Shown here: positions 10,549 through 44,549 of the stretch, in pieces
Layout of the letters: the number at the start of each line of letters is the position of its first letter
Numbering within the stretch: position 1 is the first letter of the stretch
From: Sphaerodactylus townsendi
Lineage: Eukaryota
Length of the DNA: 64,000 bases
Assembly (NCBI RefSeq): GCF_021028975.2
Contig: NC_059427.1
Coordinates: 8,494,001 to 8,558,000, forward strand
Direction: 5' to 3'
Notes under the pieces: model-generated
The model's input: only the letters and a program-made list of their open reading frames with translations
What the model was told of the DNA's origin: nothing
Database searches by the model: none
Program-made: the position numbers and the translations under genes

Positions 10549-11262
10549 ATGGAGGAACCAGATCCTACAGGCCTCACCTTAATGGAAGCCCTTCATGGCC
10601 ACCAGGCTGGGTTTGTGAGGGAATTCCTGCACAGGCAATCAGCAGAACAGATGAAACGGGAACCAAGAGAGGGATCCCTTCAGCATTGGGAAGTCCAGTG
10701 GCAAGAGTTCCTCAAGACTGTGGAGACGCCTCAGCCACATTGGGCAGGTTCAGAGTTGCCACAGGAGCCCACACCATGGGATGATGCCAAGACCTTTCTA
10801 TCTTCTTTTGAGCAAGTGGCCAAAGCCTGCCAGTGGCCCAAGGAAGAGTGGGTGGCCCGACTCCTGCCAGCCCTCAGCCATGAAACTGAGCAAGCTTTCA
10901 TTAGCCTGAATGATAAGGATAGGAGGGATTATGGGAAAGTGAAGGCAGCCATCTTGCAAGGAGACACCTTGAGGAGGGAGAAGCAGCGTCAATGCTTCCG
11001 ACATTTCTGCTACCAGGAGGCTGAAGGGCCAAGAGGGGCTTACAGCCAGCTCCAGGAACTCTGCAACAAGTGGCTGAGAGTGGAAAATCACACCAAGGAG
11101 CAGATCCTGGAGCTCTTGATCTTGGAGCAATTGCTGAGTGTCCTTCCCACAGAGATCCAGAGCCGGGTGAGGGAGAGCGGACCTGAGAGCTGCTCCCAGG
11201 CAGTGGCCCTGGCTGAGGAGTTCCTCTCAAGGCAGCAAGAGGCACAAAGATGCAACGATCAG
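10549..11262 (+). CDS. Gene A exon 1: extended SCAN domain
   Basis: ATG at 10549. SCAN motifs [61 protein letters not shown]. Donor cag|gtgaga; 714 nt, phase 0. Confidence 0.93.
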
Positions 11263-12063
11263 GTGAGAACAGTTCCTTCTGTTACCCCTATGTGACGTGT
11301 GGCCTGTGTTGATATCTCTCTCCACCGTGACAACCATTCCATTCTCCATTTTGTGACAGGGAAGGCAAGCTGTGAGCTGAGCAAGATTTGTTGCTTGCCT
11401 GTCCTTGACTGACAGCACTGGTCAGTTCTGTCCACTACTACACCCACGGTCTTTTGGTACCCTAGGCCAATCATTAGTCTGAATAGCTTCCGCCCACCAC
11501 CACTGCAGCCCAGGTGGTTGCCTTTGCCTACCCAGCCTATCTTTCCCCTCCTCCCCAAGGAGGGAGGAAGAGCAGCTGGCCATTTCAATGCCCAGCTGCC
11601 AAGGGGGGGGGGGCGCAATGCCCAGCTGCCAATGCTTCTTACTTACCTGGCTCTAAGCACTCCAACACAGGTGCAGATAGACAGTGAGTCCCAGCAGCTG
11701 GACTCTGCCATACCCACCAAGCTGGTGATAGCTAGCTGGTCTCCTTCCCTCCCTCCCATGTGGCTAAGAAGGAAGGCTAGGGGAACCACCTTGAGGACCC
11801 CTGCACTAGACAACTGGTTATGTGTACCTCATGGGTGGGCCGGCTCTGACTATACTGTGTCCTATCTCATTTAAAAGGTGTCATGTCTTATAATCAAGCC
11901 TAACAGATCCCAAGAAACCCAGATATAATTTCTCCTTTATGTGTGGTAGTGGCGCTGTTTGGTGCTGAGCAAAGAAGGAAGAACAGAGCCTTTATCTCAT
12001 CAAGCATTCTCCATCCCATCTCTCTTCCTGTGTTCCTAAAAAGGCACCTCTGTGCTCTTGCAG

Positions 12064-12196
12064 GTGGTGTTTGAAGAGGCTTTTAAAGAGGTGACAGCGA
12101 CAGCCTCTGAGGCAGGCCAGACTTCATCTGACCACAAGCTGCGGCACTCGTATATGGAAACGAAGCAGAAGGAGTATGGGGAAGCCAGCCTGTTAG
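12064..12196 (+). CDS. Gene A exon 2 (linker)
   Basis: ttgcag|GTG ... TTAG|gtaaag; 133 nt open (VVFEEAFKEV...GEASLL), phase 0 to 1. Confidence 0.85.
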
Positions 12197-13158
12197 GTAA
12201 AGAGGGCAGGCCAGGTGGGGCCTGAGTCCTTGGGTGCTCTGAAGCTCCTTTTCTTCTTTCAGGGAATTCAGGGGCTGCTCCATCCTTGGAACTTTTAGAA
12301 TTGTTGATGAGGTGTAGAAAAGGGCAGGCTGGAAGGGGGAACTGCAGAAGCAGAGCCAATAACATATGAGGGAACAATTTAGTCAGTCAGAGAGCCACCA
12401 TGGTGTAATAGTTAAGAGCTGTGGACTCTAATCTGGAGAAATGGGTTTGATTCCCCATTCTTCCTCATTCACCTGGGGCCAATCACAGTTCTCTCAGAAC
12501 TCTCTCAGAAATTATTAAACTGTATAATAATTATCAGCTGTTTTAAAATTTGAACTAGAATGCAATGATATCAGAAAACTGGATGAATAGAATATATAGC
12601 CAAGTTCCCAGGATTTGTTTTTTGCATCTAAACATTCACGGATGGGATCTCAAAAATAATGTTAGATGCGCACCAAAAAAAAATCCCTCTGTGTGTAATT
12701 CTGACAAGCGACTTTCCTTTACAAGATTTAACGATGAAATTTTGAAGACTCCCTAGGGAAAAGTGGATTTCCTTCGCAGCAAAATAGAGGAAGACTTATG
12801 TGCAGAAATAAGTTGAAGGGTATGGAGGGCAGAATGCGTGGATTGGGTTTTAATGAGAACTGGAAACCAGCTTCAGACTCGGTGATTTTTCTGCTCTCTG
12901 CAAAGTGAGCTATATTGATAATCCTTTTCTCCTAGCAACAAATAAGCTGGTGAAAGGGCTGCTTTGCCACCATGGGTTATACTGGGAGTGGGACTTCTAC
13001 AGTGTATTCTTTTTAAGGGCTAACTCCCCCTTTTTCTGCTCCTTTTCAATATTGTCTGCAGTATTTCTCACTACAGAAAAAGCTGAGACAGTAGGGTGAA
13101 AATTCTAGATAAGATAGCAATTTGAAAGAACCCTTTATTCTTTTCTTTATGTCAGCAG

Positions 13159-14171
13159 GCAATGAGTGGGACAGCCAGATGGAAAAGAAACAACATGAGT
13201 TCTTGTCAGGAAGACCTGAACAGGAGGAACGGAAAGGAATTTGCTGGAATCAAGATAAAGCTAAGGGGCAAGAGTGGAATGTATTGAAAAATACAGATAA
13301 GTCCATCCTTTGCCAGGGTGGAAACTTCCATGAAATCCCAGTACAAGAGGAGAATCAAACTGAAATTAAAAGAAGGAAGCTCCTTGGTGCAGATTGGAGA
13401 ATGCACACAGTAGAGCAACCAAATAAAAGCTTCACATTTGGAAAGACTTACAGTCAAAGGAGAAACCTGAATAAACACGAAATGCTCCATGAAGGACAAA
13501 AGCCATATAAATGCTCTGAATGTGGAAAGAACTTCACAAGGAGCACAAGCCTTACTTCTCACAAAAGAGTCCATACAGGAGAAAAACCATATAAATGCTC
13601 CGAGTGTGGAAAGAACTTCACCAGGAGCACCACTCTGACTTCCCACAAGAGAATCCACACAGGGGAGAAGCCATACAAATGCTTAGAGTGTGGGAAGAAT
13701 TTCAACCGGAGAACAAATCTCACTTCACATAAAAGAATGCATACTGGGGAGAAACCATATAGATGCTCAGAGTGCGGAAGGAGGTTCGGTGATCAGTCAA
13801 GCCTTGTTAAGCACAAGAGGACCCACACAGGAGAGAAGCCCTATGAGTGCTCAGAGTGTGGGAAGGGTTTTACCACAAACACAAATCTTACTTCACATCT
13901 AAGAATGCACACAGGGGAGAAACCATACAAATGCTCTGTGAGTGGAAAGAATTTTACAACAAGCACAAATCTGGCTTCACATCAGAGATCTCACATTGGG
14001 GAGAAACCCTATAAATGCTCTGAATGTGGAATGAGTTTCAGTCATAGCACAACCCTCACTTCACATCAAATGATTCACACAGACAAGAAACAGCATAATT
14101 GCTTAGAATATACCAGAAGCTTTAGTGAGGTATCATGTCTTAATGCATATCAGATAGTATACACAGGATAA
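13159..14171 (+). CDS. Gene A exon 3: C2H2 array (6 canonical + 3 degenerate fingers); spliced gene join(10549..11262,12064..12196,13159..14171) = 619-aa SCAN-ZNF
   Basis: cagcag acceptor; open to TAA at 14169-14171; repeated CxxC..H..HTGEKP; total 1860 nt in frame. Confidence 0.92.
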
Positions 14172-14964
14172 AAAAACCCATTTGGGTGTATGGAATGTGA
14201 AAAGAACTTCATTTAGAACACAGATCTTAATTCACATTGAAAAATCTTTCAAGGAGACTGTGCAAACAGAGTTTCCCATACACACAAAGTAATTACATTC
14301 CCTATGCTGTTATAGACACAGTTATAGCACACAAGCCGTATCAGTATCTAGCTAAAGTTCTTGGTGTAAATCAGACTTGGTGTAAATAGATCTGAGAAGC
14401 TGTGACTGTCAGAAAATGAAAAATCAATTCAGATACTAAGGAGGGAAAGAAACAGTGGAAAAGTTTATGTTGTTTTTATTTGGTTACTACATGTATATAT
14501 TTACACCTAAAATAATCTATTTTATTTGCTTCCTCAAAAGGTTATTGTGACAAAAGTCAGTCTGTGGTAGATTTCTCACAAGTATGTGCAGACTTTGCAG
14601 TAAAAAGATGATCAAAGTCTTTAATCACTACCCACTATCCTGTGGACTCCAGTTCCATGCTATTCCACTGGACAGAAGAGAAAATTCAAAAGGAAAAATA
14701 GAATTTGAACTAAGCCATCCTCTTCTCTAGGAGTGATTAGCTGATCTGGCCAATCCAGCGCAAAGCCTTGTTTCTGATATTGTTTCCAGTTAGAAAATTA
14801 CCAAAATGATACTCCTGCCCACCAAATAGCTACCACGGTCCTGCTGAAACTGGTTCCCCTTGTCTCTAAAAAGGATGAAGTTTGGCAAGATGTTCCCATA
14901 GGGGAATAGGTTAATGAAGACCCATTAGTTCAATATCCTAGAAACTACACATGACACTTTTGAG

Positions 14965-15275
14965 CCTAAGGCTGTTGTGGATTTTTGTTCCTAACATTTT
15001 GTTGACCCTAACATTTTCTTGTTCCATAGTTTGTGCTCCTAACATTTCACCCACATCTGTGGCTGGCATATTCAGAGGCATGTTATGGTGAGATGTGTTT
15101 CTTTCCATGGCAGAGTCTCTTCTTAGTACAGAAACACATCTTACTGTGAGATGCCTCTGAAGATGCCAGTCATAGATGTGGGTAAAACGTTAGGAGCAAA
15201 GTGTACCACAGCCACACAGCCTGGAAAACCCATAATTGCTAGTTGATTCCAGTTCTGAAAGCCTTTGACAATACA
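14965..15275. mobile_element. Penelope-like terminal fragments in inverted arrangement
   Basis: ctgaagatgccagtcatagatgtgggtaaaacgttagga and its reverse complement flank an internal hairpin. Confidence 0.55.
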
Positions 15276-15770
15276 TTTCTCAAACAGTTTTTCCCCCATA
15301 TTGTAGGTAGTTGGGACAAGTTCTTATCCACTTTTGTTCCCTGCAACCAGTGCTATATGAGTTGTGTGACATGAGACTGTATTTATTTTTACTTTTAAAA
15401 ATTTATGGCCTGCTTTTTCTCCCCAACTGGGACTCAAAGTGGTTTAGAGCATTATTCTTCCCTCCTCCATTTTATCCTCACAACAACCCTATCAGGTAGG
15501 CGAGGCTGAGCATTTGCAATTGGCCCAAGGTCACCCAGCAAACCTTCATGGTTGGTGGGAATTTGAACTTGGTCACTGAAGGTCCTAGTCCTCCATTTGT
15601 ATCCAGTACAGCGTATCTAACAAAAGGAGTTTGAGTCATGAAAATTTATATCCTGAAAATCTTTCTGGTCTCTAAGGGGTTCCTGGATTAGAACCTAGCA
15701 ATGATCCCAGCACTTGTTTTTTGCATCCAAACATTCAGGGATAGGATCTCAAAAATAATGTTAGATGCAC

Positions 15771-15853
15771 ATGAATGAATGAATGAATGAATGAATGAAT
15801 GAATGAATGAATGAATGAATGAATGAATGAATGAATGAATGAATGAATGAATG
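15771..15853. repeat. (ATGA)n microsatellite, about 20 units
   Basis: Direct reading. Confidence 0.97.
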
Positions 15854-16199
15854 TCTGTGTGTAAATCTGAGGAGCGACTTTCCTTCCTTTAACTGCGAGA
15901 TCTTGAAGGCTCCTTAGGGGAAAGTGGATTCCCTCCCCAGCAAAATAGAGGAAAACTTATGTGCAGAAATGAGTTGAAGCGTATGAAGGGTGGAATGCAT
16001 GGATTGGGTTTTAATGAGAACTGGGAACCAACTTCAGCCTCGGTGGTTTTTTCTGCTCTGCAATTCCCTTCCGTCTTTCACGAAATGTATGGGCCCTGAC
16101 CCTCCCCACCCCCAAAACACACACTTTATCAACTGCAAACACGTTATGCTCTTTGCAAACTCTGTCAATCCTTTCAGAACTGGGAAACATTTTTTGCAA

Positions 16200-16581
16200 G
16201 ACCCTCCTGCCTCAAAGCCTCCCGGTAGCAGCCAGCACCATTCAGGCCGGGGGCGGGGGGGTGGCTGGGTCCGGGGTGCGGGGAGGAAGCTGCCCCATTC
16301 AGGACGCCTTCCCAGTCCCCCTACTCCGAGCGCCCTGTCCTTGCAGCCCTCCTGTGCTTTCAGGCAAAAAAGAGGAGCAACCAAACGACTCAAGCAAGTC
16401 AGAAGCATATTTCGCCTCCCGTGCTCCATCCTGGCAAGAGTTAAGCCGGCAGAGCTTTGCATCCTAGAGAGGATCATAGTAGTGGTGGAGGCTCTTTTCC
16501 GGAGAAGGAAGCGATCGCTTTTGAATGTCTCCCCCCTTCCAGCTGTAGAGAGAGGGGAGGAGGAGCGAGCCGGGAAGCTTG
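16200..16581 (+). promoter_or_regulatory. CpG/GC-rich putative promoter and non-coding first exon of gene B
   Basis: Local CpG enrichment, GC boxes (gggggcgggg at ~16250), candidate donor ccag|gtaggt at 17119/17120. Confidence 0.45.
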
Positions 16582-17109
16582 TGTAACCCCTGTGTCAGAA
16601 TGGGATGACCCAGAAAGGGGTGGAGTCTGAAATGAAGCAGAATGCTGCAGAACTCATGAGGTTGGAGGAAGCGAGACTACCAGGCTGGGACCTTGATTGA
16701 TTTTATTAAGCCCTTAACACCTTGTTTAAGGTAACTGCAATGTTGTGGGGAACTAGTGGGAAGGGAGTTTATTTTTTTTGCTATATTGTAAATGTTAGAA
16801 TTTATTGTTTCAGGGTTTTTGTGTATGTAAATGGTGAGAGTTTTCTGGGAACCTTCATCATCTTGAAGCCCATTCACCAAGCCTCAGAAGTCTTCAAAAC
16901 CAACCACCAGCAAAGAAGAATTGGACTTGGCAATATCAGTAGACTGTAAATAAGGACTTGAAAATGCAAACTTAACAGGACTGCAAAGTGTAAAGGTTAA
17001 ATGTTTTAAAAGTGTTATTTGTTAAGTAAAGTAAACTGTTTTGTTTAAATTTGGTTCTTTGCAACGCCTTCCAAGTACTGCCCCACAGAACCCACAAGCT
17101 GAGGTTACA
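16582..17109 (+). mobile_element. Solo LTR (gypsy/ERV1-type), 528 bp
   Basis: Inverted termini TGTAACC...GGTTACA; exact 4-bp TSD CTTG (16578-81 and 17110-13); AGTAAA signal at ~17025-17035. Confidence 0.75.
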
Positions 17110-19071: not shown

Positions 19072-19812
19072 ATGAAAATGGAGGAGCAAGATCCTGCAAA
19101 CCTTGCTGTAGAGAAGAGGTTGGAAGAAATCGGGACAAGCCACCATGTCCTCCAGGCTGGGAGCATTGGGGAGTTCTCCCAGAGGAAACCAGGAGATTCC
19201 GTGAAGCAGGAGCCACGAGAGGGGCTTCTTCAGCAGTGGGAAGTCCAGTGGCAGGAGTTCCTCAAGACAGTAGAGTTCCCTCTCTCAAGATGGGCAATTC
19301 CACAACTGCCAGAGAAACCTTCCCCATGGGAGGACACCAAGGCCTTCCTGGCCTCCTTTGAGCAAGTGGCTGAAGCCTGTCAGTGGCCCAGAGAAGAATG
19401 GGTGACGCAACTCCTACCAGCCCTCAGGGGAGAAGCCGAACAGACCTTCAGCAGCCTGGATGCCCAAGACAGAAAGGATTATGGGAAAGTAAAGGCAGCC
19501 ATCTTACAAGGGGACACTATCAACAGGGAGAAGATTCGCTTGCACTTCCGATGTTTCTGCTACCAGGAGGCTGAGGGGCCACGGGGTGCTCTTAGTCGAC
19601 TCCAGGAACTCTGCCGTCAATGGCTGAAGGTCGAGAGGCACTCAAAGGAGCAGATCTTGGAGCTCTTGATCCTGGAGCAGTTCCTGACTGTCCTCCCGCC
19701 AGAGATCCTGAGCTGGGTCAAAAGGTGCAACCCAGAGACCTGCTCCCAGGCAGTAACCCTGGCAGAGGAGTTCCTGTTGAGGCAGCGAGAGACTGAGAGG
19801 CAGGAGAAAGAG
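19072..19812 (+). CDS. Gene B exon 1: extended SCAN domain
   Basis: Open, 741 nt; [47 protein letters not shown]; donor gag|gtgata. Confidence 0.9.
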
Positions 19813-19924: not shown

Positions 19925-20323
19925 CATAAGAACATAAGAACATAAGAACAAGCCAGCTGGATCAGACCAGAGTCCATCTAGTCCAGCTCTCTGCTACTCG
20001 CAGTGGCCCACCAGGTGCCTTTGGGAGTTCACATGTAGGATGTGAAAGCAATGGCCTTCTGCGGCTGTTGCTCCCGAGCACCTGGACTGTTAAGGCATTT
20101 GCAATCTCAGATCAAAGAGGATCAAGATTGGTAGCCATAAATTGACTTCTCCTCCATAAATCTGTCCAAGCCCCTTTTAAAGCTATCCAGGTTAGTGGCC
20201 ATCACCACCTCCTGTGGCAGCATATTCCAAGCACCAATCACACGTTGCGTGAAGAAGTGTTTCCTTTTATTAGTTCTAATTCTTCCCCCCAGCATTTTCA
20301 ATGTATGCCCCCTGGTTCTAGTA
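19925..20323 (-). mobile_element. CR1 3' fragment, same young family as 5037-6109
   Basis: Starts with (CATAAGAA)n; reverse-complement match to ~5700-6109. Confidence 0.92.
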
Positions 20324-21930: not shown

Positions 21931-22051
21931 GTGCCCTTGGAGGAGGCAGTTGGGAGCATCTTTGAGGCAGGCCGGGTTCCATCTGAGAATGACCAGATGC
22001 AGCTCTCAATAGATGTCAAGGAAGAAGAGGAGGGAGATGCAAGTCTGCTAG
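21931..22051 (+). CDS. Gene B exon 2 (linker)
   Basis: ttgcag|GTG ... CTAG|gtaaga; 121 nt open (VPLEEAVGSIFEAGR...GDASLL), phase 0 to 1. Confidence 0.85.
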
Positions 22052-22719: not shown

Positions 22720-23620
22720 TTTCCCAAGCTGACCTGGCTATCATTGTGGTCCATGCAACAGTCACCTCCAGGCTAGACTATTATTGCAACTCTCTCGCTT
22801 CTGAGGGCCTGGCCTTGCATCTGGTTCGAGATTGAAAATGGTCCAGAATACGTGAGCGTCTGCATGCCTGCCAGGTGCCATGAGAGAACATATTACCCCT
22901 GTGCTCCCCTCGCTTGCACTGGCTACCAATCGACTCAATCATTTTCAAGGTGTTGAGGTGTTGGCAATCCTTAAGGCCTTATGCATGACCTGGGACTCCT
23001 CCTCGCGGTACCCTCATGGGACCGCCTTACCCCATATGTCCCAAATAGGTTCCTGTGTTCGCAGAGGCCAACTTACTGAGGATCCCTAGCTCTTCGATGA
23101 TAATGGCTGGTTTTCACACCTCGCCAGAGACCTTCACAGCTTCTGGCCCCTGCCTGGTGGAACGCTTCTTCCATCAGCTGTCCGGCCCTGCAGGATCTTG
23201 CTGAGTTCTGGGTAGGCCTGTAAGACTGAGCTGTTCCACTGGACCTTTGGGGTATTCAGCCGCTGATGAGGGGGCCACTCCTTTCCTCCCTCCTTTATGA
23301 TTATCATGGAGATCCTGCCACACTCTTCCTTTTGGGGTTCTTATGGGAATTGATAGCAGGCTTTCATCTGGAGTTAATTTCACGCTGCATTTTAAATGGG
23401 AGCAGGCTTATTTTATTAGAGCTGTTTTAACCTATATTTATTGTATCTTATTACGATGCTGTGCTCTATCTATGCTGTTCATCACTTGGAAGTTCTTCGG
23501 GAGTGGGCGAAATGAGTTTATAAACCCCAAAAAATTTAAAATAATAATAATAATAATAATACACATTACTAGCGTACACATAATAATAATAATAATAATA
23601 ATAATACATAATAATAATAA
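22720..23620 (+). mobile_element. L2 LINE 3' fragment ending in (AAT)n
   Basis: VVHATVTSRLDY-CNSL, HITPVL and LHWLP motifs typical of the L2 ORF2 C-terminus. Confidence 0.75.
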
Positions 23621-24890
23621 TAGCTTCGCCGCCATGCTGCCTGGGCTCAAGCGCTGACCTGGGCGGGCGCTAGCTTGGGGCGGCTGGAGGAGAGGCAGCT
23701 GGCGCGGGCGGGCGAAGCTTCCGGGAGGCGGCTGCTCATGGTGCAGCTTACATGCTGGCATGGAGTGCAGTGCCTAAAGATCTTGAACGGCACTTAAAAC
23801 AATTGGCGCTGACAAAATCACCATGGGTGCGCTCCCACTCACCACATTAGCCAGCTGGGTTTCTCTTGTTCAGACGCTGGTTTCGGTGGACGTCCCTCAT
23901 ATCCCCAGCGCTCGCACTGTCGCGGGTTGCAGAAATTGCAGCGCTTCCTCCTCCCTGGCTGCTGGCGTCAAATCTGCTCTTCAAAAAAACAGCAACATTT
24001 TTCCCAAACCCCGAGCTTGGCGCTGGTGGTGCGGTGAGGGAACCCGAAGATGACCAGCTGTTGATCTCGCCATTGGGCGCAGGAGCTTCCGCCAATCAGG
24101 GAAAGAATCCCTCCATTTTGTTTGGGGAGGGCGCTAACAACCGTCGCCGGAACGGTTTCACATGAAGAGCGTTGAGACGCGGTGCACAACGTGACGTGAC
24201 GATATTGTTCCCTTTGTTCATGTTTATTGCTGCAAATTCACAGCTTAATTTAGTTTACACGAGGTAATACGGTGAGGTGCTGCACTGCATTCAGACCAGG
24301 AAAGTAGCTCGGTGGCGGCGGTAAGAACTGATTTTCACTTTATTTTTTATGCTGATCGCCAGCATGTGCAGAGCGCCTCAAACAAATGCTTCCAAAGTTT
24401 CCAGCGTTTCTGATGGCGACGCAGACATCCGGGAGCCTATCAAAAACGCAGCCTCGGCCCCAGCTAATGAAAAATGGAGGCTCCTCCCTCCATAGACGCG
24501 ACACCTGCAATGCCAGCCAATGAAAACACTTCATTGCCTCTATTCCCATGAAATCGCCGTTATTGCCTGCAAGCGTTAGCTCTTTAATGTAGCAAATGAG
24601 TGGGGAGCAAATAGTCTCCGTGGTCATAAGCCGCTTGAGGCTTTTTTTCAGCTGCGGACGCCATTCGCGGAGTTGCACTACGGCGAGGTAAGTGGGGAGC
24701 GACCCCATATGTCAGCTGCAAAGGCCACTCATCGGCTCTCAATGCGCATTGATCAAGCCGATACATCACGCACAGTCCTAGATGTTTGGGAAGTGTCCGA
24801 CGCGTGATGTAATATGTCAAAAAACTTTCAGCATATTGATCTTGGGTTTCTTTGCTTTCAAAAGTAACTGTTCCCTTTGGTATAATAATA

Positions 24891-24924
<34 letters not shown>

Positions 24925-26012: not shown

Positions 26013-27172
<1,160 letters not shown>

Positions 27173-33050: not shown

Positions 33051-33862
33051 ATGAAAATGGAAGAACTAGACTCTACAGGAGACGTACGTTGTGTGGCATC
33101 TGAGGCAACAGGGGAACAATGCTGTAACGGCCCAGAGTGCAAGTCTCTGATGGACTTTGAGAGAGAAAGGAAGCTCTTGGAAGCTACGCAGTCTGCAAGC
33201 AATGAAGGATCCTTCCAATCAGCACCTTCATTTCAGGTGAAAGAGGAGCCACCAGAGGGTTTGGCTGAAAACTGGGAAGCCCGATGGCAGGAGTTCCTAA
33301 GGATGGTGGAGTCCCCTCACTCAAGGTGGGAAATCTCACAACATCAAGAGAAACCCTCTCCATGGGAAGACACAAAGAGCTTTCTGTCCTCAGCTCCTTG
33401 AGCAAGTGGGTCAAGCCCAAGCAATGGCCTATAGAGAACAATGTGGGTGGCCTAGACTCTTTGCCAGCCCCTCAGCCTGAGGGACCTAAGAAAGCCTTTA
33501 TTGGCCTGAATGCTGTTGACAGAGAGGATTTTGGGAAGGTGAAGACAGCCATCTTACGAGGGGACGTCATCAGCAGGGAGAAATGGCGCCAGCACTTCAG
33601 AGGTTTCCATTACCAAGAGGCCGAGGGGCCGAGGGAGCCCTTACGGGGTCACCCAACAACTTTGTTCAATGGCTGAAAATAGAGAGGCTTCAAAGGAGCT
33701 AGATTCTGAGCTGGGCTGATCCTGGAACAGTTCCTGACCATCCTGCCTCCAGAGATCCAGAGCTGGGTGAGGGAAAACAGTCCAGACACCTGCTCTCAGG
33801 CAGTGTTCCTGGCTGAGGATTTCCTGCTGAAACAGCGGGGGACCCAGAGATGGGGAAAGCAG
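33051..33862 (+). CDS. Gene C exon 1: extended SCAN, frameshifted at ~33385-33720 as assembled
   Basis: MKMEE start as in gene [50 protein letters not shown] appear in shifting frames. Donor cag|gtgaga. Confidence 0.75.
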
Positions 33863-34235
33863 GTGAGATCATGTCATCAAGATCTGGTTAGATAATTCAG
33901 CCATCATTTGCTCCCCTGCCATGCTTTTCTTCTCTGTTCCCTTACTCCTGTCAGTCCCTTCTTGGCCTTTCTCTGTTTCTTGGCTTTTGAAATCTTTAGT
34001 TCAGGCTTGAGGGCCTTGTTATATTATAGAAGTCTTCTTGCTTGGAACAAAAGCCATTTAATCACATTCTGTACCTGGCTTCTAGCCAGCTTACCTTTCC
34101 TTTGCCATAGACCTAAATAACTCAGCTATCATTTTGCTCCTGTTGTGCCTCTTCCTCTGATCCCTTACACCTGTCAATCCCCCCCTTCGCTAGTCTCTAC
34201 TGCTAATTTTAAAACAACCTTTCCGTGGTCTATAG

Positions 34236-34362
34236 GTGTGGTATTTCAGGAGGCAACAGCACAGTACACTGAAGCTGGCCAGACTCCATCTGATGTCAGC
34301 CAGAAGCATCTGGGCAGAGAGACCAGAGGTAGGGAAGGCAACAGGGAATGCCAGCCAGTTGG
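34236..34362 (+). CDS. Gene C exon 2 (linker), with indels
   Basis: VVFQEATAQYTEAGQTPSD is paralogous to gene A exon 2; gtaagt donor. Confidence 0.65.
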
Positions 34363-35069
34363 GTAAGTGAAGGGGCCTTTGGGATAAAGACTTATGACTC
34401 AGCTGAGACTTGTGACTCAAGCTGAGGGATTTGGACCCACAGGCTGAAGATGAGTAGGATCCTCAGGGAGGACCTCGACAGATTCTCCAGAGGAATCATG
34501 GCTACAATTCCCATCATCCCCTGCCAGCATGATCAATTGGCCATGCTGGCAGGGGCTGATGGGAATTGTAGTTCATGAACATCTGGAGTGCCATAGGTTC
34601 GCCACCACTGGTATAGATTAATTTGGGTTTTTGTTTGACATTTTTGTCTCATTCCATTTCTTTATGGTTTTCCTCTTACAAGAGAAAGCATCACACCTGG
34701 GATATCTGAGAGCATTCAGTGACATCTGATTTGCATCTGATTGGACAGATTTTTGCTTAGTTTATGTAAGAGAAATCTTGTCTGTGTCTAAGCATTATTT
34801 AGGGTGATAAAATGAGGATAAGATGCTCGGGGTTTTCTTTTCTTTGCCCAAAGCTAGTATTATCATGAATCTGATATGTATTTCAATGCCCTCTATTTCG
34901 ATGTACCTTCCTGTCCAAACAGAGCTCCACTCCACACAGTTTTTGAGGCAAATATATTCTGTCCTTTTCCTCTATATAATTATAATTGTTTCTATACCTT
35001 GTTTGTCCATTTCCATTTTCCTCTGGTCCAAGTAATAAATTTTCCAGGATTCTCTCATTATTTCTCCAG

Positions 35070-35336
35070 CAACCCAAGGGTGGTTGGCCATCAGTGATGG
35101 GAAGAAATATGTGCCCAGAAATTCAGAATCAGTGGCACCCCACAGGATATCAACTTGGAAAGAAGAGAATGTTTCTCTATTATTTAAAAAACTTGGGAAA
35201 GTACCTCAACAGAGTCAGGAGAGGGCAGAGCATCAGCAGGAGACCCAGCCAATGGAGGAGATGGACGAATTCCTTCCTTGTGGGGGAGATTGTAGGGTTC
35301 CTAATGACACCATAGTCCAGACAGGAGCTAACACAG
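35070..35336 (+). CDS. Gene C spacer exon
   Basis: ttatttctccag acceptor, cag|gtaaga donor; 267 nt open, phase 1/1; paralogous to 48123-48323. Confidence 0.65.
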
Positions 35337-35375
35337 GTAAGAAACAAAATGAAAAATTAAGTAGAACTCAGTATA

Positions 35376-35380
<5 letters not shown>

Positions 35381-35422
<42 letters not shown>
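35381..35422. repeat. (AC)n microsatellite
   Basis: Direct reading. Confidence 0.97.
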
Positions 35423-35424
<2 letters not shown>

Positions 35425-36657
35425 GCTGGTGTGTGGCAAAAACTTTTCCTTGGGAGCAATCCTATGCAAGTCAACATAGAGGCAAGTTCTATTTCATTCA
35501 GTGCAGCTTGCTCCCAGGAAAGCATTAATAGTGTTCCAGCTGTTGTGGCTTAAAGCTTAAAATTGGAGAACTCATCCTGAGGAGGAGCCATATAAAACTC
35601 TGTTGTGGAAAGATATTCACTCATGATTCAACTCATACCTGATACCAGACAGATACTTGGTGGTTCAAGATATTGCTGCCACAAGATTTACAATAGCAAT
35701 CTCTCTTTCACTGTACGTCTGCAAAGACATCCATGTTCTGGTGTGATCTCTACAAGACATAATTGTGTATCTTTCCAAGAAAGACTGAAATCATGCAGGA
35801 ATGTGAGTGTGCTTTTTTAGGGAGAACTGTGAGACATAACTGGGTTTTTTGTTCCTTCCAAAAGACTTGCAGCTCCCAAATTCAACCCCCTCTCCTGGTT
35901 TATTTTGATATGGAGAAAGGGTAAAGGTCAGCAGGTGTGTGCTGGATCCCTTTGATATTTGAGAATTGTGGGGATCCCTCAGCAAGGGTGTACTGATTCT
36001 TCAGTCCCTGCTCAGACTGCCTTCTTTGGCCCTGAGGTCCTCTGAATGTTCGTTCCAGTGGCAAAGAACCCCTTTATACTAATGATGTCTAAACTTTGAG
36101 AGAAACTGTTGTGCAAGTTTGACTCCTTAATGTGAAATAAACAACTGGAATCCCTACCACTGGCTCTTTTAGGGTTCCAGTCGCTGCAGTGTAAACTTCT
36201 GGTGTGTTTGCCCTTACAACAGGATCTCATTCTTCTAAGCCTGTTGAAATCAAGGAAATTAAAAAGGATAACTCTGCTTAGCATTTCTCTGCAAAACAAG
36301 CATTAGGCAAAAAAAAAAATCATGAAATGGATTTCTAGTGTCCTACCTCTCTTATTTAAACTAGAAACTTCAACCCAGATGAGTAGATCAGACCTCAGTG
36401 CCCTTTTTACTCAGCAGTAACAGGAATCACCAGTAACCTCAGTTTAGTAAACACACCTCTTTCCACAACACAAGGACTAGTAACATTTGACATGAAAATG
36501 TTACAGGAAAGATAAGGGACAGAGAGAATCACTCTGTAGCAGGACCTGGCCAAAGAGAAGAAAACAGGGATACGTACACATGATGTACAGAAGGGATGGA
36601 TTTGAAGTTTTGTTTCTCTAATGGGCATTTCCCAAATTTCTGTCTTTATTCCTGCAG

Positions 36658-37949
<1,292 letters not shown>

Positions 37950-38287
37950 ATGCTTGGAATGCAGAAAGAGCTTGAATTGCAGCAATTAAAATTATTTCAT
38001 ATCAAGAAATTGGTATGTGGGGAAAGGGAGAATTCACCCATGAACTTTCCTAGACATTTATCACAAAATATCCAAGATGCTAAAGGAGCAAAAACCGTAA
38101 ATGATCTTTGGGCAACATAACAGTTAATTTATTGTGGCATAAACAATTGTGATTTACAGCTGATGTTATTTTCAGTGATTACATTTTCTCAGTGGAACAC
38201 CCTGTCTAATGACTCATTTGTGATTTTGGTGGCATGGTTTCAATTAATAGTTGTAATGATGGAGAGAGGGTTTTTTTTTATCTAGGC

Positions 38288-38974
38288 CAGGAGTCCCCAG
38301 TGTGGTGTCCATGGGCACCAGGGCACTCATTGACACTTTTGCTTGTCAGCCAGGTATTTTTTAGAAAGTTGGGGGTTACTTGAAGCTAGCAGAGCTTCTT
38401 ATTGGCCACTGGAGATCTGCCAGATACTGACAAATGAGTATTCCTTAGATAAATATGTACATTTGTGTGTAGCATGGTGTAGTGGTTAAGAGCAGGTAGA
38501 TTCTAATCTGGAGAACTGGGTTTGATTCCCCTGAGTGGTGGTGAACCAGATGTGTTTCTGCACTCCTACATTCCTGCTGGGTGACCTTGGGCTAGTCACA
38601 ACTCTCTCAGAACTCCCTCAGCCCCACCTACCTCACAAGGTGTCTATTATGGGGAGAGGAAGGGAAAGGAGCTTGTAAGCCACCTCAAGTCTCCTTACAG
38701 GAGAGAAAGGTGGGGGTATAAATCCAAACTACTACTCCTTCTTCTTCTTCACATAAGAAAATATTTTTGAACAATATGTTCATTTTTAAAAGCATCCTGT
38801 TAAAACAGAGCTTCTGCCACAAATGGTGAAGACCTACAGAGTTCTGCATTGCCTCACTCCCAGACATTTTCTGATCAGCTCTTCCTTGTGCATCGGTCAT
38901 TTTGTGGCTGCGCCCAGCACCTTGTGTCAGATTTCCACAGGTGTCCACTAGCTCAAAATGTTTGGGGATCCCTG
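38288..38974. mobile_element. Old hAT-type non-autonomous element with a nested SINE (38470-38751)
   Basis: TIR caggagtcccca / tggggatccctg; imperfect 8-bp flanks atctaggc / atctggcc. Confidence 0.55.
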
Positions 38975-39261
38975 ATCTGGCCTTCCTTCAGAATTTTCAT
39001 AAATAAAATCAATTCTGCAAATGCTTGAAGTGTGGAAAGAGCTTCCATTAGACTGAATATCTAAATCCATATGAAATTGTTTATGTGGAGAAAACTTGGT
39101 GGTCATTGTAGAGGCAAAAAAGGCAGGATATACATTTTGTAAATAAATAAAGAATACATAACTAACACGCCCCCCCCCCCCAAATAATCATAGAAAGACG
39201 AGGATAAATACAAAGTCAAAAAGTGCTTTAAAGCATAGTTAATTCACAATGGGTAAATGTA

Positions 39262-39747
39262 CAGTGGAACCTCAGTTTTCGTTGGTAATCCATCTGAAAA
39301 GAATCAATAAAAACTAGGGCGATGAAACCGAGGCAAATTTTTCCATAGGAATCAGTGTAAATCCAATTAATCCATTCTAGGCACTCCAAAAAATATACTA
39401 AAAACAATTTTTGGGGGTGAATAAACATAGTGTTTAATGCTGAAAACAGTAACTAACAATAACACTAGGACCAGCTTCAGAGCCAGTGGACCAATGTCAC
39501 ACCAGAAAGCTGTCCAAAGGGTATGTTCTGGCCTCTTTTAGATTTGTCTGAAGCAAGGACAAGACATTGTCATTAAACAAGTTCCAGACACGGCCTGCAA
39601 CAGCTTTGTCCGGGTGATTTTTCTCCACAAACCCCTGCACTTTACTGCAAATCGATGAAAACCGAGGCAAATCAATGAAAACCGAGACAAAATTTTCACT
39701 GAAAAGATCGATGAAAACCGAAACCTATGAAAACCGAGGTTCCACTG
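39262..39747. mobile_element. Tigger/pogo-like (Tc1-mariner) non-autonomous element
   Basis: TIR cagtggaacctcagttttc / gaaaaccgaggttccactg; TA TSD on both sides; subterminal ATGAAAACCGA repeats. Confidence 0.88.
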
Positions 39748-40049
39748 TATTCTAATAGCTGACAACAATTCACACAGTTTTCAGTGACAACCTGACAAGA
39801 TTTGAGTAACTGTATACCATCATGTGGTATGTTTCATTACTCTGGAGAGAAAAAAATAGTGCTTATGAGGTGTCACTAACTCACAAACATATTCCACAGC
39901 ATTCTCCCTGTAATAATGATGGCATCTACCTTTTTGGAGCTGGAGGTATTCTCACAACACAAAAGTCACAAAAAATGTTCTGATTGGGACAAAAGTTCAT
40001 ACTATGAACTGAACATATCCACTAGTGGATAAACTTGTGTGTGTGTATA

Positions 40050-40235
40050 TAATGCTGTCATGTCAACTCACAGTCCTCGACTCCTTGCAACCCTAGCAAA
40101 GAGCTTTCAGAGTAACTGAGAAGCAGAGTTGTTGTGCCATTTCTGTCTCTTCTATGTCTTCCTTTGGAATTTCCCTTCCAAGTTCCAACCCTGCTTAGCT
40201 TCCAAGATTTGGTAAGATTGAGCTGTACCATGCCA
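40050..40235 (-). mobile_element. 5S rRNA-derived SINE
   Basis: Minus strand atcttggaagctaagcagggttgg resembles the 5S internal control region; related pieces at 43075-43200 and 43490-43690. Confidence 0.55.
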
Positions 40236-41761
40236 TCTTCCCTCCCAGAGAAAGAGCTTTGAGATATTTTGAGGTGGGAGAGAAAAGAATGTCTGGAGAG
40301 TTTCTTTTGTTGCTCCATCACTGAGACTTTAAAGAAAATGCATGCAACTGTGTAGGTATTTGTTTTGGAAAATACTCCTATCTTAATGTTCAATGATATC
40401 TGTAGATAGACCATATAGAAGTTCTCCCTTCGTTTCCCACCCTCTGTCCTTAAAACAGTGTAAGCACTTCTTGATGTGGGAGGAGTTGACATGGGAGGAG
40501 GTGGTTTCTGAAATCATGGGGTCTGGAACTTTATCATAACTTCTCTTTTTTTGAGGATAGAGAGGAGCTAGCAACCAAAGTAGATTTAACAAAGTGAGTG
40601 CAATATGTTCCTACCAGCTTAACCCTTCAGAAACTTAGCAGTCACATTTTGAACTGCTAAGTTATCCCTTCAGAAACTTAGCAGTCACATTTCCAGATCA
40701 GGGGTGTCAAACAAGCAGCCTAGGAGTCAGATTTGACCCCTGAGGAGGGACGACCTGCTGAGGGCAACCATCCCACACACTGCTTGCTCTGATCTGGATG
40801 CAGGTCCAGGCATTCCACTAACTTACTCCACTGAGTGGTGAATCATACAGAGTTGTAACTGGCAGCTTGGATGAATGCTTAAAGGCGCCACTAACCACTT
40901 AATATATCTCATATCATATCACTCTCATGGCACCTGCTTCGGTAACACAGAGAGCTGAGTCCTGAGCATGCTTCCTAAGGAACAAATTAAAATTAAATGA
41001 TTGCAGGCTGTTAAGATTCGTTTAAGAGAGAACGGCCAGAGATTCAAATGTCATAAACAGAAGAGGAACAGAAAATATTTTTAAGAACTCTGTTTTGAGA
41101 TCTCTCTGGCTCATTCAGCACATGCAAGAATAATGCACTTTCAAACTTTCAGTGCTCTTTGAAGCCTCGCAGCGGAATGGCAAAATCCTGCAAACAGCTG
41201 TGAAAAGTGGTTTGAAAATGGATTATTTTGCATGTCTTGGAAGGGCCTGTGGGTTCATCAGCACATCTACAGGTATAAAAGCATTCTCTATCTTCATCTA
41301 AATCTAGTCTAGTTCCTTGGCCGTATGTTGGAGGGCAGTCTAAAATACATCTCTGTCCTAACACCTATGCCATGATAATGCTCTTTCTCAAAAAAATAAA
41401 AAAATGAGGGGGGGGGGATCATAATCTGCTTTCTCTAAGGTTGCCATCTGCTGGTTGGGAACTTCCTGGAGGGCTGCGGGCAGAGCCTGAGGGTTAGGGA
41501 AGAGCAGAAACCTCGGTGAGATATAATACCACAAAGTTCTTCCTGCACAGCAGTTGTTTCATCCAGACAAACTGATCTATATAGTCAGCCGATCAGTTTT
41601 AATTCCGTGAGATCTCCAGGTTTCACCTGGAGGTTGGCAACCCCAGGTGGAGCTTTTGCTTTTCTGCAGCTAACAATCTACATACTCTGAAATACCCCGT
41701 CTTCAACGAATCCCCCCATTCATGACAACAAAGCCCATATATACTGATACTGATAATAGCA

Positions 41762-41978
41762 CAGGGGTCTGCAACCTGTGGCGAACCCTTATCGCAGAAT
41801 CTTTCCTTGCTATACTGTGGCTCCACATGACCTGGAGGTCCGAGCATAGCATGGGCGTTGTCCCTCCAGGAAAGGTGAGTGGAGGGGCCAAACTGGAGGC
41901 TTTCGGCTCGGTAGATCTTCGGGGCTGGGGAAAACGGGTCCAAATGACTCTTTGGATGGTAAAGGTTGCTGACCCCTG
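41762..41978. mobile_element. hAT MITE, 217 bp
   Basis: 16-bp TIR caggggtctgcaacct / aggttgctgacccctg; exact 8-bp TSD TAATAGCA. Confidence 0.9.
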
Positions 41979-42027
41979 TAATAGCATATTCGGTGGTGAC
42001 ATATTCGTTTTTGAGAGTTCATTCTTA

Positions 42028-42178
42028 GGTCCCTTCCGCACACGCAGAATACTGCACTGTCAACCCACTTTCACAATTGTTTGCAAGTGGGCTTTGCTAT
42101 TCCGCACAGTAAAATCCAGCTGCAAAGTGCATTGAAAGTGGATTGAAAGTGCATTACCCTGCATGTGCAGAAGGGGCC
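42028..42178. mobile_element. PIF/Harbinger-like MITE
   Basis: TIR ggtcccttccgcaca / tgtgcagaaggggcc; TTA TSD. Confidence 0.78.
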
Positions 42179-42299
42179 TTAGTTTTGCTAAACTTGCATC
42201 GGTTGGAACATCTCAAGACTCGGGTAGAATTCTTGGAGTACTTCATCAGCACACCCCCTCCCACTTTAAAGCTAATTCTTAACCATTTAAAGGGTTAAA

Positions 42300-42660
42300 A
42301 CGAAAGAGAGACGTGTCTCCTAGACAGACCAGTCAGAACGAAGGGTGGGGGGTGCGTATTGAAACTGTTGAGGCTGGTTTTCCTGTTTGGAGGAGAAGGT
42401 TTATTTTGTGCAATTTTTGCGAGGCGAAGGAAGAGTGCTGGTGTGCATGTGAGTTGTGGGGGGGTATATTCGGGGTACATAGCAGGAACCACAGCACGTG
42501 GGCGCGGGAGGGGAGGACCCCCCCAGCTTCTTCCCTCATTCCTTACTCCTTGCTTCTCCCGTGAGGTCCCCTCCCACTCAATGCGTTCCGCATCGGGGAA
42601 AGTATTCTTTCTCTCCGTTCTAAGATACAACATTGTGGTCACTGAATCAAGCGGCTTGGG
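42300..42660 (+). promoter_or_regulatory. CpG-enriched putative promoter of gene D
   Basis: Local CpG cluster, CACGTG E-box and GC-rich run at ~42496-42515, about 1.2 kb upstream of the SCAN exon. Confidence 0.35.
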
Positions 42661-43767
42661 AGATTTGCAATCTACCTCCAAAAATTCAGAGTTAGTTTTT
42701 CATCTTTTTGCACTGCCGGGGCTGAAATGTATCTCACATGGAGCACTCTAAACAGATAACTGTCATGGGAGCTAAGAATGGAACTTCCAGGTGCAGGAGC
42801 AGTGTATCTTTTGTAACTCAGTTAAGAAGACAATGCCTAAAGGGTGTCCACTAGTTTGGGGATTAGGGGAGGTGGTACAACAGATGCTGTGCCTAGAGAG
42901 AAAACAGACAATCCTCTGATTTTTCTGGCTTTAAAAGTTTCTTTTAAAGTGGCTCAAGATCACCCAGCAAACTTCCATGGCTGGGTGGGGATTCGAACCT
43001 GGTTCTCCCAGACCACAGTCTGATGCTCTAACCACTGCAAACCAACAGTTCTGGGATTTTAATTAATTTATTTATTTGGCAACCCTGTAAGGTTTTAAAG
43101 GCAAGAGGCATTCGGAGGTGGTTTGCCAGTTCCTGGTTTCTTGTTAGGACCCTGGTATTCCTTGGAGTTCTCCCATCCAAATACTTGCCAGGGTCAGGGC
43201 TGAGAGTGTATGATTGTCTCAAGGTCACCCAGCAAGCTTCCACTGCATGAGTGAGGATTTGAACCTGCGTTTTCCAGATCTTAGTCCAATACCTTAACCA
43301 CTACACCACGCTTGCTCTGGGATACACAGTCCAAAAAGGGGAAACAGAAAGGTGGGGACATCTCCAAACAGCTACCAGCTCTGGACACCTAACTATAGTA
43401 AATGTTTCTTTTAAGAAGAACTTTATGGAGCTGTAGAGACTGGCTGATGTATTCTGGCCTAAACATGTGTGACTTGACCTCTTGTCAGAACCCAGAGGCC
43501 AAGGCAGTCAACCCTAGTATTTGGACAGGAGACCTCTAAGGAATACCAGGGCCATGATGCAGAGGGGCAGGCAATGGCTAAACCATTTCTGTGTGTCTCT
43601 TGTCTTGGAAACCTTATGCAACTTGATTGCACTTGACACTCACATTTGCAGAAGAGTAACATTAAACAGATTAAAGTATGTGGCTTGTGTCTATTCTCCT
43701 GTTTAGATGACTGTCCAGTGTTCCGGAGTTTTCTGTTGTGTGATGTCATCTTTGTGAGATCATCTGC

Positions 43768-44549
43768 ATGAAAGACAAAACGGGTCCGACGCAACAGGAG
43801 GCCTTAAAAGTAACTGGAAAGGGAATTTGTAATCTCCTGATACGTTGAGGACTCGGCACAGCTTTGGAAGGAGGCAGACATCCCCCTGAAGCAATGTGGT
43901 GTGGAATGCGGTGGAGGATGCCTCTGCAGAGCATCTGCACCAGATAGGGAGGGCAGAGGAGGGTTTGGCTGAGCGATGGGAAGCCCGATGGCAGGAATTC
44001 CTTGGAACTGGAGAGTCGCCTCACTCCAGCTGGGCAGTCCCACAACTGCCAGAGAAGTCCACCCCATGGGATGACGCCAAGGCCTTCCTGGCCTCCTTTG
44101 AGCAAGTGGCGGAAGCCTGTCAGTGGCCCCAGGAAGAGTGGGTGACCCGACTCCGGCCAGCCCTCAGTGGAGAAGTTGAACTGGCCTTTTTCAGCCTGGA
44201 GGCCCGAGACAGAGAGAACTATGGAAAGGTGAAGGCAGCTGTCTTGCAAGGGGATGCCATCTTCAGAGAAGCTGCGTCGATAGCTAGGTGTTTCTGCTAC
44301 CGGGAGGCTGAGGGGCCACGGGGGACGTACAGCCAGCTCCAGGAGCTTTGCTGTCGGTGGCTGAAGGTTGAGCAGCCCTCCAAGGAGCAGATCCTGGAAC
44401 TCTTGATCCTGGAGCGGTTCCTGACTGTCCTCCCACCAGAGATCCAGAGGTGGGTCAGGGAATGTGGCCCGGACACATGCTCCCAGGCAGTGGCCCTAGC
44501 CGAGGAGTTCCTGGTGAGACGGCTGCAGCCAGTGAGACAGGAAAAGCAG
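43768..44549 (+). CDS. Gene D exon 1: extended SCAN; 5' part frameshifted as assembled
   Basis: ORF 43896-44594 has [24 protein letters not shown] and [18 protein letters not shown]; donor cag|gtggga; candidate ATG at 43768. Confidence 0.8.

Follow-up and report, generated by a model that had tools for sequence, protein, structure and literature searches.

The role of the SCAN domain beyond dimerisation is a long-standing question, and it is raised in a particular form by a gene cluster of the gecko Sphaerodactylus townsendi (CM037616.2, ~8.494-8.558 Mb), in which four SCAN-C2H2 zinc-finger genes (A-D) lie in tandem on the + strand. An earlier note on this 64-kb stretch of DNA, which was analysed as a whole and is called the window here, proposed that a conserved extension upstream of SCAN is the N-lobe of a retrotransposon capsid and that the proteins might form hexamers or lattices rather than only dimers. 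Here we follow up this proposal.

Organisation of the gene cluster

The features of the cluster are collected in Table 1. Gene models were searched exon by exon, and the spliced proteins used were the database entries P0012 and P0032. In genes A, B and D, the motif WExxWQEFL...PW[DE]D...FEQVAxACQWP...YGKVKAAxLxGD was found in one open frame with the Pfam SCAN domain (PF02023) directly after it. The ~100-residue motif had been attributed to all four SCAN exons; this was true of the three open frames, whereas in gene C it is readable only via frame changes. The SCAN scores of A, B and D were 125.7, 128.0 and 111.0 bits, and that of gene C (22 bits) fell under the gathering cut-off of 27 bits because the exon is frameshifted.

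The exon that holds both extension and SCAN (the ESCAN exon) is intact in genes A and B, open but without an in-frame ATG in gene D, and broken in gene C by eight indels relative to A (+4, +1, +4, +2, +3, +1, -2 and +1 nt). Gene A, whose ESCAN exon has a splice acceptor near 10476 and the donor CAG/GTGAGA at 11262/11263, is the sole complete gene of the cluster in this assembly. The gene B ESCAN exon corresponds to residues 1-247 of the RefSeq protein P0012, and the gene B finger array is truncated, as out-of-frame finger remnants at 26828-27127 follow its TAA. The public model of gene C starts at 35252 and lacks the ESCAN exon. In gene D, indels at 43904-43954 put the ATG at 43893 out of frame, and a compensated -2/-1 nt frameshift at 44270-44287, where the extension meets SCAN, garbles the inter-lobe helix. 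Genes C and D may be without expression; in the inverted copy of the duplicated segment, the versions of both genes are intact.

A C2H2 array is retained in A and D, with six or more and six fingers, respectively; B has one finger, and the frameshifted array of C is split over two frames. Downstream of each ESCAN exon we found spliced linker and zinc-finger exons, not the protease, integrase and RT-RNase H of a live Gmr1-like element, and the RT-like ORFs at the locus were only CR1-like LINE fragments. An Rfam scan of the window gave no match.

Table 1. Positions of the ESCAN zinc-finger genes and their parts, numbered from the first letter of the window.
Feature	Position	Strand	Remarks
Gene A ESCAN coding exon	10549..11262	+	238 codons, intact
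Gene A leading helix, residues 42-58 (WExQWQEFL), conserved	10672..10722	+	low model confidence
Gene A extension core, residues 75-143, putative capsid N-lobe	10771..10977	+	four modelled helices
Gene A Pfam SCAN, residues 144-231, capsid C-lobe	10978..11241	+	125.7 bits
Gene A middle exon, acidic linker	12064..12214	+	no Pfam family, no KRAB; boundaries fit annotated 626-residue product
Gene A zinc-finger exon	13156..14171	+	six canonical C2H2 fingers (13506-14078) and additional degenerate fingers
Gene B ESCAN exon, intact	19072..19812	+	extension 19237-19515, SCAN 19528-19791; donor GAG/GTGATA
Gene B middle exon, acidic linker with VKEEEE	21931..22051	+	no Pfam family
Gene B last exon	26170..26576	+	single C2H2 finger, then TAA
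Gene C ESCAN exon (about)	33051..33865	+	eight indels, in extension and SCAN alike
Gene C zinc-finger region	36621..37949	+	fingers in two reading frames
Gene D ESCAN exon	43893..44549	+	open from 43896; extension 43977-44255; donor CAG/GTGGGA
Gene D middle exons	47398-47484 and 48122-48322	+	match the paralogue product P0032 at 100%; without Pfam family
Gene D zinc-finger exon	51486..52298	+	open frame, six C2H2 fingers
Duplicated segment	34002..50739	.	inverted copy, 96% identity, ~143 kb off on same chromosome

Absence of KRAB

The reported lack of KRAB-A was borne out. A KRAB-A regular expression, which recovers the KRAB-A of P0157 as a control, gave no match in the six-frame translation of the window, and Pfam revealed no KRAB in the middle exons, which belong to no Pfam family in genes A, B and D, or in the annotated products P0012 and P0032. 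KRAB was absent in 129 of the 130 extension-bearing family representatives and present in one; its absence is the norm of the family and no special feature of genes A-D.

Conservation and spread of the extension

As had been proposed, the extension was found to be conserved like SCAN, while the linkers diverge. Pairwise dN/dS between the paralogues, which differ by a dS of 0.5-1.2, was 0.19-0.28 for the extension (0.12-0.28 for the core at gene A residues 75-143) and 0.20-0.23 for SCAN, far from the 0.67-0.97 of the N-terminal linker. Across 123 lepidosaur sequences, the mean top-residue frequency was 0.77 in the extension core and 0.76 in SCAN, compared with 0.39-0.50 in the loop and tails. 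By these sequence measures, purifying selection is as strong on the extension as on SCAN.

A search of 1.84 billion proteins with an extension-only HMM yielded 2,230 matches; the best 150 were listed, all at E ~1e-30 or better, and the 1,913 weaker matches outside those listed may include Gag. The listed matches were squamate in 10 of the 10 cases whose source was named. In a word search, which found 305 relatives, all of the 120 listed were lepidosaurs. The motif is not due to chance, since 149 proteins among the HMM matches listed had E <= 1e-30 and the motif-to-motif spacing was constant across 120 homologues. The same residues are conserved in geckos, iguanians, skinks, amphisbaenians, snakes and tuatara, and Anolis loci carry the same extension at 66-69% identity. 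Extension and SCAN occupied one uninterrupted exon in the six species checked, and 75 extension-bearing representatives contained SCAN in 71 cases and C2H2 fingers in 56. Genes A-D are tandem paralogues of an ESCAN zinc-finger family that has undergone a large expansion in lizards, snakes and tuatara, and the locus represents no new kind of gene.

Predicted structure and structural matches

The AlphaFold (AF2) model of the gene A ESCAN, with a pLDDT of 83 overall and ~90 across residues 80-235, revealed a four-helix extension core of ~70 residues (helices 76-93, 98-108, 111-118 and 128 onward) directly before a five-helix SCAN. In this monomer prediction, the first helix of SCAN prolongs the last helix of the extension, and the two form one continuous inter-lobe helix (residues 128-151, pLDDT ~90). 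Residues 60-73 form a variable loop behind the leading WExQWQEFL helix, which may be the counterpart of the N-terminal tail of the capsid N-lobe.

The best Foldseek matches were SCAN dimers (E 1.6e-5 to 4e-3); in particular, the superposition on 3lhr_A reproduced the SCAN monomer fold (E 1.6e-5, target TM 0.85, rmsd 1.5 Å, 87 columns). Next in the whole-length search were bilobar capsids aligned over 155-211 columns with weak scores (E 0.08-2.6), namely rat Arc 7r24 (prob 0.97), human Arc 7r23 (0.90), Arc 6gse, Ty3 6r24, MLV 6hww and dArc1 6s7y. These capsid alignments showed a TM of ~0.3, an rmsd of ~15 Å and sequence identities of 11-17%, and they could stem from the SCAN half, with any helical region sufficing to extend them. 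The top match in the viral library was a fungal metavirus Gag, which was also weak.

The same 4+5-helix layout has been reported for the Ty3 and Arc capsids, and the Ty3 capsid has been described as a 'double-SCAN fold'. The modelled layout thus supports the proposal that the extension is a capsid N-lobe, and Arc, Ty3, MLV and dArc1, which head the non-SCAN matches, support it weakly (E >= 0.08). The N-lobe reading is not new, because ESCAN has already been published (Emerson and Thomas 2011); in the review that summarises that work (PMC3406341), the Anolis ESCAN is described as a Gmr1-like CA of full length with zinc fingers fused to it.

Proposed mechanism and the question of a lattice

The best overall explanation, which we consider likely, is that genes A-D are ESCAN zinc-finger paralogues with a domesticated full-length Gmr1-like Gag capsid, whose products form SCAN dimers with an additional N-lobe contact surface and act independently of KRAB. 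The ESCAN unit would comprise both the N-lobe and the C-lobe of that capsid, as Emerson and Thomas proposed for Anolis. The C-lobe (SCAN) would form the known domain-swapped homo-/heterodimers between family members. We infer that the N-lobe would be fixed rigidly to the swapped first helix and would provide a second conserved protein-contact surface per dimer, which would either buttress the dimer or, in the manner of the Arc N-lobe, bind a partner peptide. The zinc fingers would bring the dimer to DNA, and a repressive or chromatin effect, if any, would not require KRAB/TRIM28, in agreement with reports of nucleosome anchoring by mammalian SCAN-ZFPs; most SCAN-ZFPs do not bind TRIM28.

If both lobes were kept for assembly, ESCAN zinc-finger proteins would instead build hexamer-/pentamer-like capsomers or a lattice on DNA, as Arc, PNMA2 and PEG10 do, and serve as a KRAB-independent effector in that form. 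The predicted bilobar fold, with Arc, Ty3, MLV and dArc1 as its best non-SCAN matches, is consistent with such assembly, as is a constraint on the N-lobe equal to that on the dimerising C-lobe; moreover, the Ty3 N-lobe builds capsomers that the C-lobe links, and individual dArc lobes are oligomeric. However, the modelled lobes are joined by a confident continuous helix, whereas the Ty3 capsid needs a flexible inter-lobe linker, a feature that permits quasi-equivalent packing in capsids, and the known SCAN dimer is domain-swapped (Ivanov 2005), a mode of contact unlike that of the capsid CTD dimer. Additionally, in mammalian Arc the bilobar domain is a monomer when the separate N-terminal domain is absent, and the exons searched with Pfam yielded no nucleocapsid knuckle, no coiled-coil and no further oligomerisation domain. 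In our analysis, the evidence on hexamer or lattice assembly leans mildly against it, and we regard this arrangement as unlikely. It is quite unlikely that ESCAN proteins assemble on their target DNA into capsomer-like rings or arrays, in which SCAN-type dimers would be cross-linked by N-lobe contacts, the leading WExQWQEFL helix would act as a dArc/Ty3-like N-terminal tail that locks the N-lobe into capsomers, and chromatin would be coated independently of KRAB. If true, squamates would possess a capsid-derived, KRAB-independent means of coating or compacting chromatin at transposon-derived sites.

Origin of the extension

The extension could also have arisen outside a capsid, as a lineage-specific helical elaboration or a host-derived sequence that was fixed beside SCAN in the lepidosaur ancestor. 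The extensions of A and B matched no Pfam family at E <= 10, the PDB, searched by sequence with gene A and with the 123-sequence and extension-only profiles, returned only SCAN entries or noise and no Gag N-lobe, and the listed HMM matches likewise gave no Gag link; the statistical weakness of the Foldseek capsid matches points the same way. In contrast, the extension lies in the intronless block of SCAN in every species checked and, placed directly before the C-lobe, shows the helix count and size that a Ty3/Arc N-lobe would have. The non-SCAN match list was headed by bilobar capsids and not by other helical bundles, and homology to a full-length Gmr1-like CA is reported in the review cited above. 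Overall, a non-capsid origin appears rather improbable. A scan of viral contigs gave no match. In a separate scan of metagenome contigs, we observed one 1,058-base contig (L007) with a SCAN-only match, which may be mammalian, possibly human, contamination.

That the extension is an internal SCAN duplicate, and/or that its conservation stems from gene conversion between young tandem copies rather than from selection at the protein level, is very improbable and largely refuted: capsid N- and C-lobes do have one core fold in common and the locus does contain the recent 96%-identity duplication, but internal duplication is rejected because hhalign showed no similarity between the extension and the SCAN profile (probability 0.5%, 13 columns), the paralogues are old and yet have a dN/dS of ~0.2, and the same residues are conserved from geckos to tuatara.

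Under the preferred reading of a domesticated full-length capsid, hundreds of squamate genes would retain the remaining half of the ancestral capsid under a constraint equal to that on SCAN, and would therefore form a natural system for the contribution of a full capsid module to a DNA-binding protein. Candidate contributions are higher-order assembly, partner recruitment and stabilisation of the swapped dimer. The locus offers a compact test set for these, with an intact gene, a gene poor in fingers and two damaged copies whose intact twins lie nearby.

Comparison with known systems

We compared the gecko genes with the ESCAN genes of Anolis carolinensis (Emerson and Thomas 2011, J Virol 85:12043), using the summary in PMC3406341 and Anolis loci fetched here. 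Both have a conserved region directly N-terminal of SCAN, read as the remainder of a Gmr1-like capsid, and a fusion to C2H2 fingers, and the family is expanded in squamates. The gecko (sphaerodactylid) cluster differs in that it contains two damaged copies among its four and one copy with most fingers lost.

The mammalian SCAN dimers ZNF24 (3lhr), ZNF174 (1y7q), MZF1 (2fi2), Zfp206 (4e6s) and PEG3 (4bhx) match gene A residues 144-231, with E values of 1e-16 to 1e-24 by sequence and target-normalised TM values of 0.70-0.85 by fold. Many mammalian SCAN zinc-finger proteins, like the gecko genes, combine SCAN and fingers without KRAB. The solved mammalian constructs (85-98 residues, 77-93% aligned) cover gene A residues 142-227 only and none of the extension.

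KRAB zinc-finger proteins resemble ESCAN in that their C2H2 genes duplicate in tandem and encode an N-terminal module for effector or interaction functions in separate upstream exons, whereas KRAB-A is absent from the window and occurs in only one of the 130 extension-bearing representatives.

The bilobar capsids of Arc/dArc and Ty3 Gag (7r24, 7r23, 6gse, 6s7y and 6r24) and the ESCAN model have a four-helix N-lobe, putative in ESCAN, followed by a five-helix C-lobe. Particle formation is known for the domesticated Gags Arc, dArc, PNMA2 and PEG10, and is hypothetical for ESCAN. Compared with Arc, dArc and Ty3, ESCAN lacks a matrix-like or nucleocapsid domain, has a modelled rigid inter-lobe helix and is fused to a DNA-binding array.

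Organization and state of the cluster

Genes A to D, the four SCAN-C2H2 paralogs, follow one another head to tail, all on the + strand of the 64-kb window, and the exon order per gene is an ESCAN exon (N-terminal linker, extension and SCAN), one or two short acidic linker exons and a C2H2 zinc-finger exon. Canonical splice donors were present 3' of the ESCAN exons in A, B and D and polypyrimidine/AG acceptors 5' of those in A, B and C; N runs were absent from the entire window. Positions 9072-36576 are 100% identical to a 27.5-kb public locus of Sphaerodactylus townsendi (GCA_021028975.2, CM037616.2, 8,503,072-8,530,576), which places the window, as gecko DNA, at approximately 8.494-8.558 Mb of this record. 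Gene A is complete and encodes six or more fingers. The ESCAN exon of gene B is intact, and a stop follows one finger in its last exon, with downstream finger remnants out of frame. Gene C carries eight indels spread over the extension and SCAN; its SCAN score is under the Pfam threshold, its fingers are divided between reading frames, and its ESCAN exon is skipped by the public model. Gene D has 232 open codons, the first being GTG; its ATG at 43893 is out of frame owing to indels at 43904-43954, and nine residues where the extension meets SCAN are garbled by a pair of indels (-2/-1 nt) at 44270-44287.

The segment containing genes C and D (34002-50739) matched an inverted copy (locus L001, positions 1-16901) at 96% identity, located on the same chromosome at a distance of approximately 143 kb. 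This copy codes for an intact SCAN-finger protein of 787 residues and for the gene D paralog P0032 (336 residues). Only two tight clusters of small indels set gene D apart from this twin; the rest of the exon is identical. The segment and its inverted copy are separated by 248 substitutions and 284 small indels, patchily clustered, and 231 of the 284 indels are runs of a single base type. The differences may reflect either true decay or errors of assembly within a recent duplication.

At 3252-3865 (+), a degenerate run of C2H2 fingers interrupted by in-frame stops probably represents the 3' part of a fifth gene of the family, with its ESCAN exon located before the start of the window. Fragments of CR1-like LINEs, comprising the C-terminal part of the reverse transcriptase with a weak RVT_1 match, recur in the introns and spacers. 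Against an observed/expected CpG ratio of 0.27 for the whole window, CpG-rich patches were found at 23001-25000 (0.63-0.95), within gene B intron 2, and at 54001-57000 (0.5-0.65), in a G+C-rich region downstream of gene D in which no gene was identified.

Features of the cluster and of the gene A model (window positions unless residues are stated)
Feature	Position	Strand	Remark
Gene A exons	10549-11262, 12064-12214, 13156-14171	+	Agree with 626-residue public model
Gene B exons	19072-19812, 21931-22051, 26170-26576	+	Exactly encode RefSeq protein P0012 (422 aa)
Psi-K-x-E, gene A	~10650-10665		MKRE
Psi-K-x-E, gene B	~19200-19215		VKQE
Psi-K-x-E, gene C			VKEE
Psi-K-x-E, gene D twin			IKEE
CR1-like LINE fragment	5060-5905	+	
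CR1-like LINE fragment	48979-49305	-	
CR1-like LINE fragments	19930-20323, 29487-29675		
Microsatellite (ATGA)x21	15771-15853		Perfect
Microsatellite (AC)x21	35381-35422		Perfect; inside middle-exon-like region of gene C; translates as His-Thr repeat
Microsatellite (CCA)x16	47056-47102		Perfect
Weakly predicted helix	Gene A residues 42-58		AlphaFold
Disordered loop	Gene A residues 60-73		AlphaFold
Four extension helices	Gene A residues 76-93, 98-108, 111-118, 128 onward		AlphaFold
Five SCAN helices	After extension helices		AlphaFold

Constraint on the extension

The earlier note had described a stretch of approximately 100 residues, upstream of SCAN in all four copies, that was about as conserved as SCAN itself, while the linkers diverged. 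This observation was largely right, in that the extension is conserved, although copies C and D are damaged; the motif was found in A, B and D. Pairwise dS between the paralogs was 0.5-1.2, indicating that the paralogs are old. The dN/dS was well below that of the N-terminal linker (0.67-0.97, the linker being poorly alignable) in both the extension (0.19-0.28; core 0.12-0.28) and SCAN (0.20-0.23). In a set of 123 gecko, other lizard, snake and tuatara sequences, the mean top-residue frequency was 0.77 in the extension core and 0.76 in SCAN, compared with 0.39-0.50 in the loop (residues 61-74) and the tails. Additionally, the spacings between the WQEFL, GKVK and EQILEL landmarks, 78 and 55 residues, were fixed in nearly all homologs. 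These results rule out gene conversion and chance as sources of the conservation; the extension is real and constrained.

Family architecture and the absence of KRAB-A

Genes A to D belong to an already known family of ESCAN zinc-finger proteins. Among 75 representatives bearing the extension, SCAN accompanied it in 71 and C2H2 fingers in 56. No KRAB-A was found by regular expression in the six frames of the window, or by Pfam in the middle exons or annotated products, which bears out the earlier note. The same expression, which evidently works, detected KRAB-A in only 1 of 130 family representatives; lack of KRAB is therefore the usual condition in the family and not special to this cluster. 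This agrees with a recent preprint, according to which SCAN-ZFPs are strongly expanded in squamates, mostly without TRIM28 binding, and anchor nucleosomes over transposon-derived sites.

In 107 of 204 family proteins drawn from database entries P0001-P0250, versus approximately 9% expected, a psi-K-x-E motif (the form of the SUMO consensus) stands no more than 20 residues ahead of the extension. A motif of this kind showed no enrichment in the acidic middle exon (45% vs 34%). The upstream motif is a possible KRAB-independent repression handle.

A few extension-bearing proteins have a BED/hAT-type architecture. Two non-C2H2 proteins carry it at their head: P0173 (Sceloporus, 1430 aa), which combines it with Pfam SCAN, zf-BED and hAT dimerization domains, and P0249 (Crotalus, 956 aa), named ZBED5-like at source. 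In squamates the module seems to have been put to use again on proteins derived from transposases. In 13 representatives (P0121-P0133) and in P0195, a single predicted protein contains the extension two or three times. These are probably adjacent tandem genes fused by gene prediction, although they may be true double-ESCAN proteins. A metagenome contig (L007, Ga0126362_10067199, 1058 bases) gave a SCAN-only match with 63% identity to gene A residues 150-225 (query residues 111-186), with no extension ahead of it. Alone among the sequences retrieved, this contig may stem from contamination of the metagenome with mammalian DNA, possibly human.

Origin and predicted structure of the extension

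No Pfam family matched the extension at E <= 10, and PDB sequence searches gave no match to it. The extension showed no similarity to the SCAN profile (hhalign probability 0.5%), and a recent internal duplication of SCAN was rejected on this basis. A profile of the extension only (gene A residues 47-139), built from nine exons of five species, retrieved 149 proteins at E <= 1e-30, 317 at E <= 1e-10 and 2,230 at E <= 1e-3; all 10 proteins looked up by name, among the best 150 of the 2,230 matches, were from squamates. A Gmr1-like Gag would most obviously sit among the 1,913 weaker relatives (E between 1e-10 and 1e-3), outside these best 150, so that it is the literature that supplies the direct link in sequence to Gmr1 Gag. 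A review (PMC3406341) presents ESCAN, following Emerson and Thomas, as a domesticated full-length Gmr1-like capsid, and describes how in Anolis this capsid joined zinc fingers either whole or truncated to SCAN.

The AlphaFold model of the gene A ESCAN, predicted with the 123-sequence alignment, was confident (pLDDT 83, and approximately 90 from residue 80 on; pTM 0.68), and its helix 128-151 crosses the extension/SCAN boundary unbroken. The modeled layout of four helices followed by five is the one reported for the two domains (N- and C-terminal) of Ty3 capsid and for Arc; the authors of the Ty3 study named this layout a "double-SCAN fold", and the N-terminal tail of Ty3 capsid is unstructured (PMC6525542). 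In the Foldseek comparison that the earlier note had suggested, run with the whole model, SCAN dimers were the top PDB matches, and the next were all bilobar capsids aligned over 155-211 columns: rat Arc 7r24 (prob 0.97, E 0.08), human Arc 7r23 (0.90), Arc 6gse, Ty3 6r24 and immature MLV 6hww, with dArc1 6s7y ranked lower. The best match in the viral library was ORF1 of a fungal metavirus (prob 0.75). The capsid matches are weak (TM ~0.3, rmsd ~15 Å) and may lean on the SCAN half, yet they point the right way for an N-lobe. Reading the extension as a capsid N-lobe is reasonable on the helix layout and the fold matches, although these matches are weak and the sequence searches silent; the interpretation is already published and hence not new.

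Possible function and comparison with known capsids

In the best-supported reading, the SCAN half would dimerize family members via the known domain-swapped contact, and the N-lobe, carried on the swapped first helix, would supply a second conserved surface, while the fingers would give the DNA address. The Arc N-lobe binds peptides; the surface of the ESCAN N-lobe could likewise bind a partner, or it could reinforce the dimer.

The novel part of the earlier note's interpretation, that ESCAN proteins might form a lattice, is unsupported speculation. The lobes of dArc are oligomeric, but the capsid domain of mammalian Arc is a monomer when its additional N-terminal domain is missing, and a bilobar capsid domain alone does not predict assembly. 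No nucleocapsid or coiled-coil module was found by Pfam in the ESCAN and middle exons. Furthermore, Ty3 packing needs the flexible linker between the two capsid lobes (PMC6525542), whereas the ESCAN model places a rigid helix at the corresponding position.
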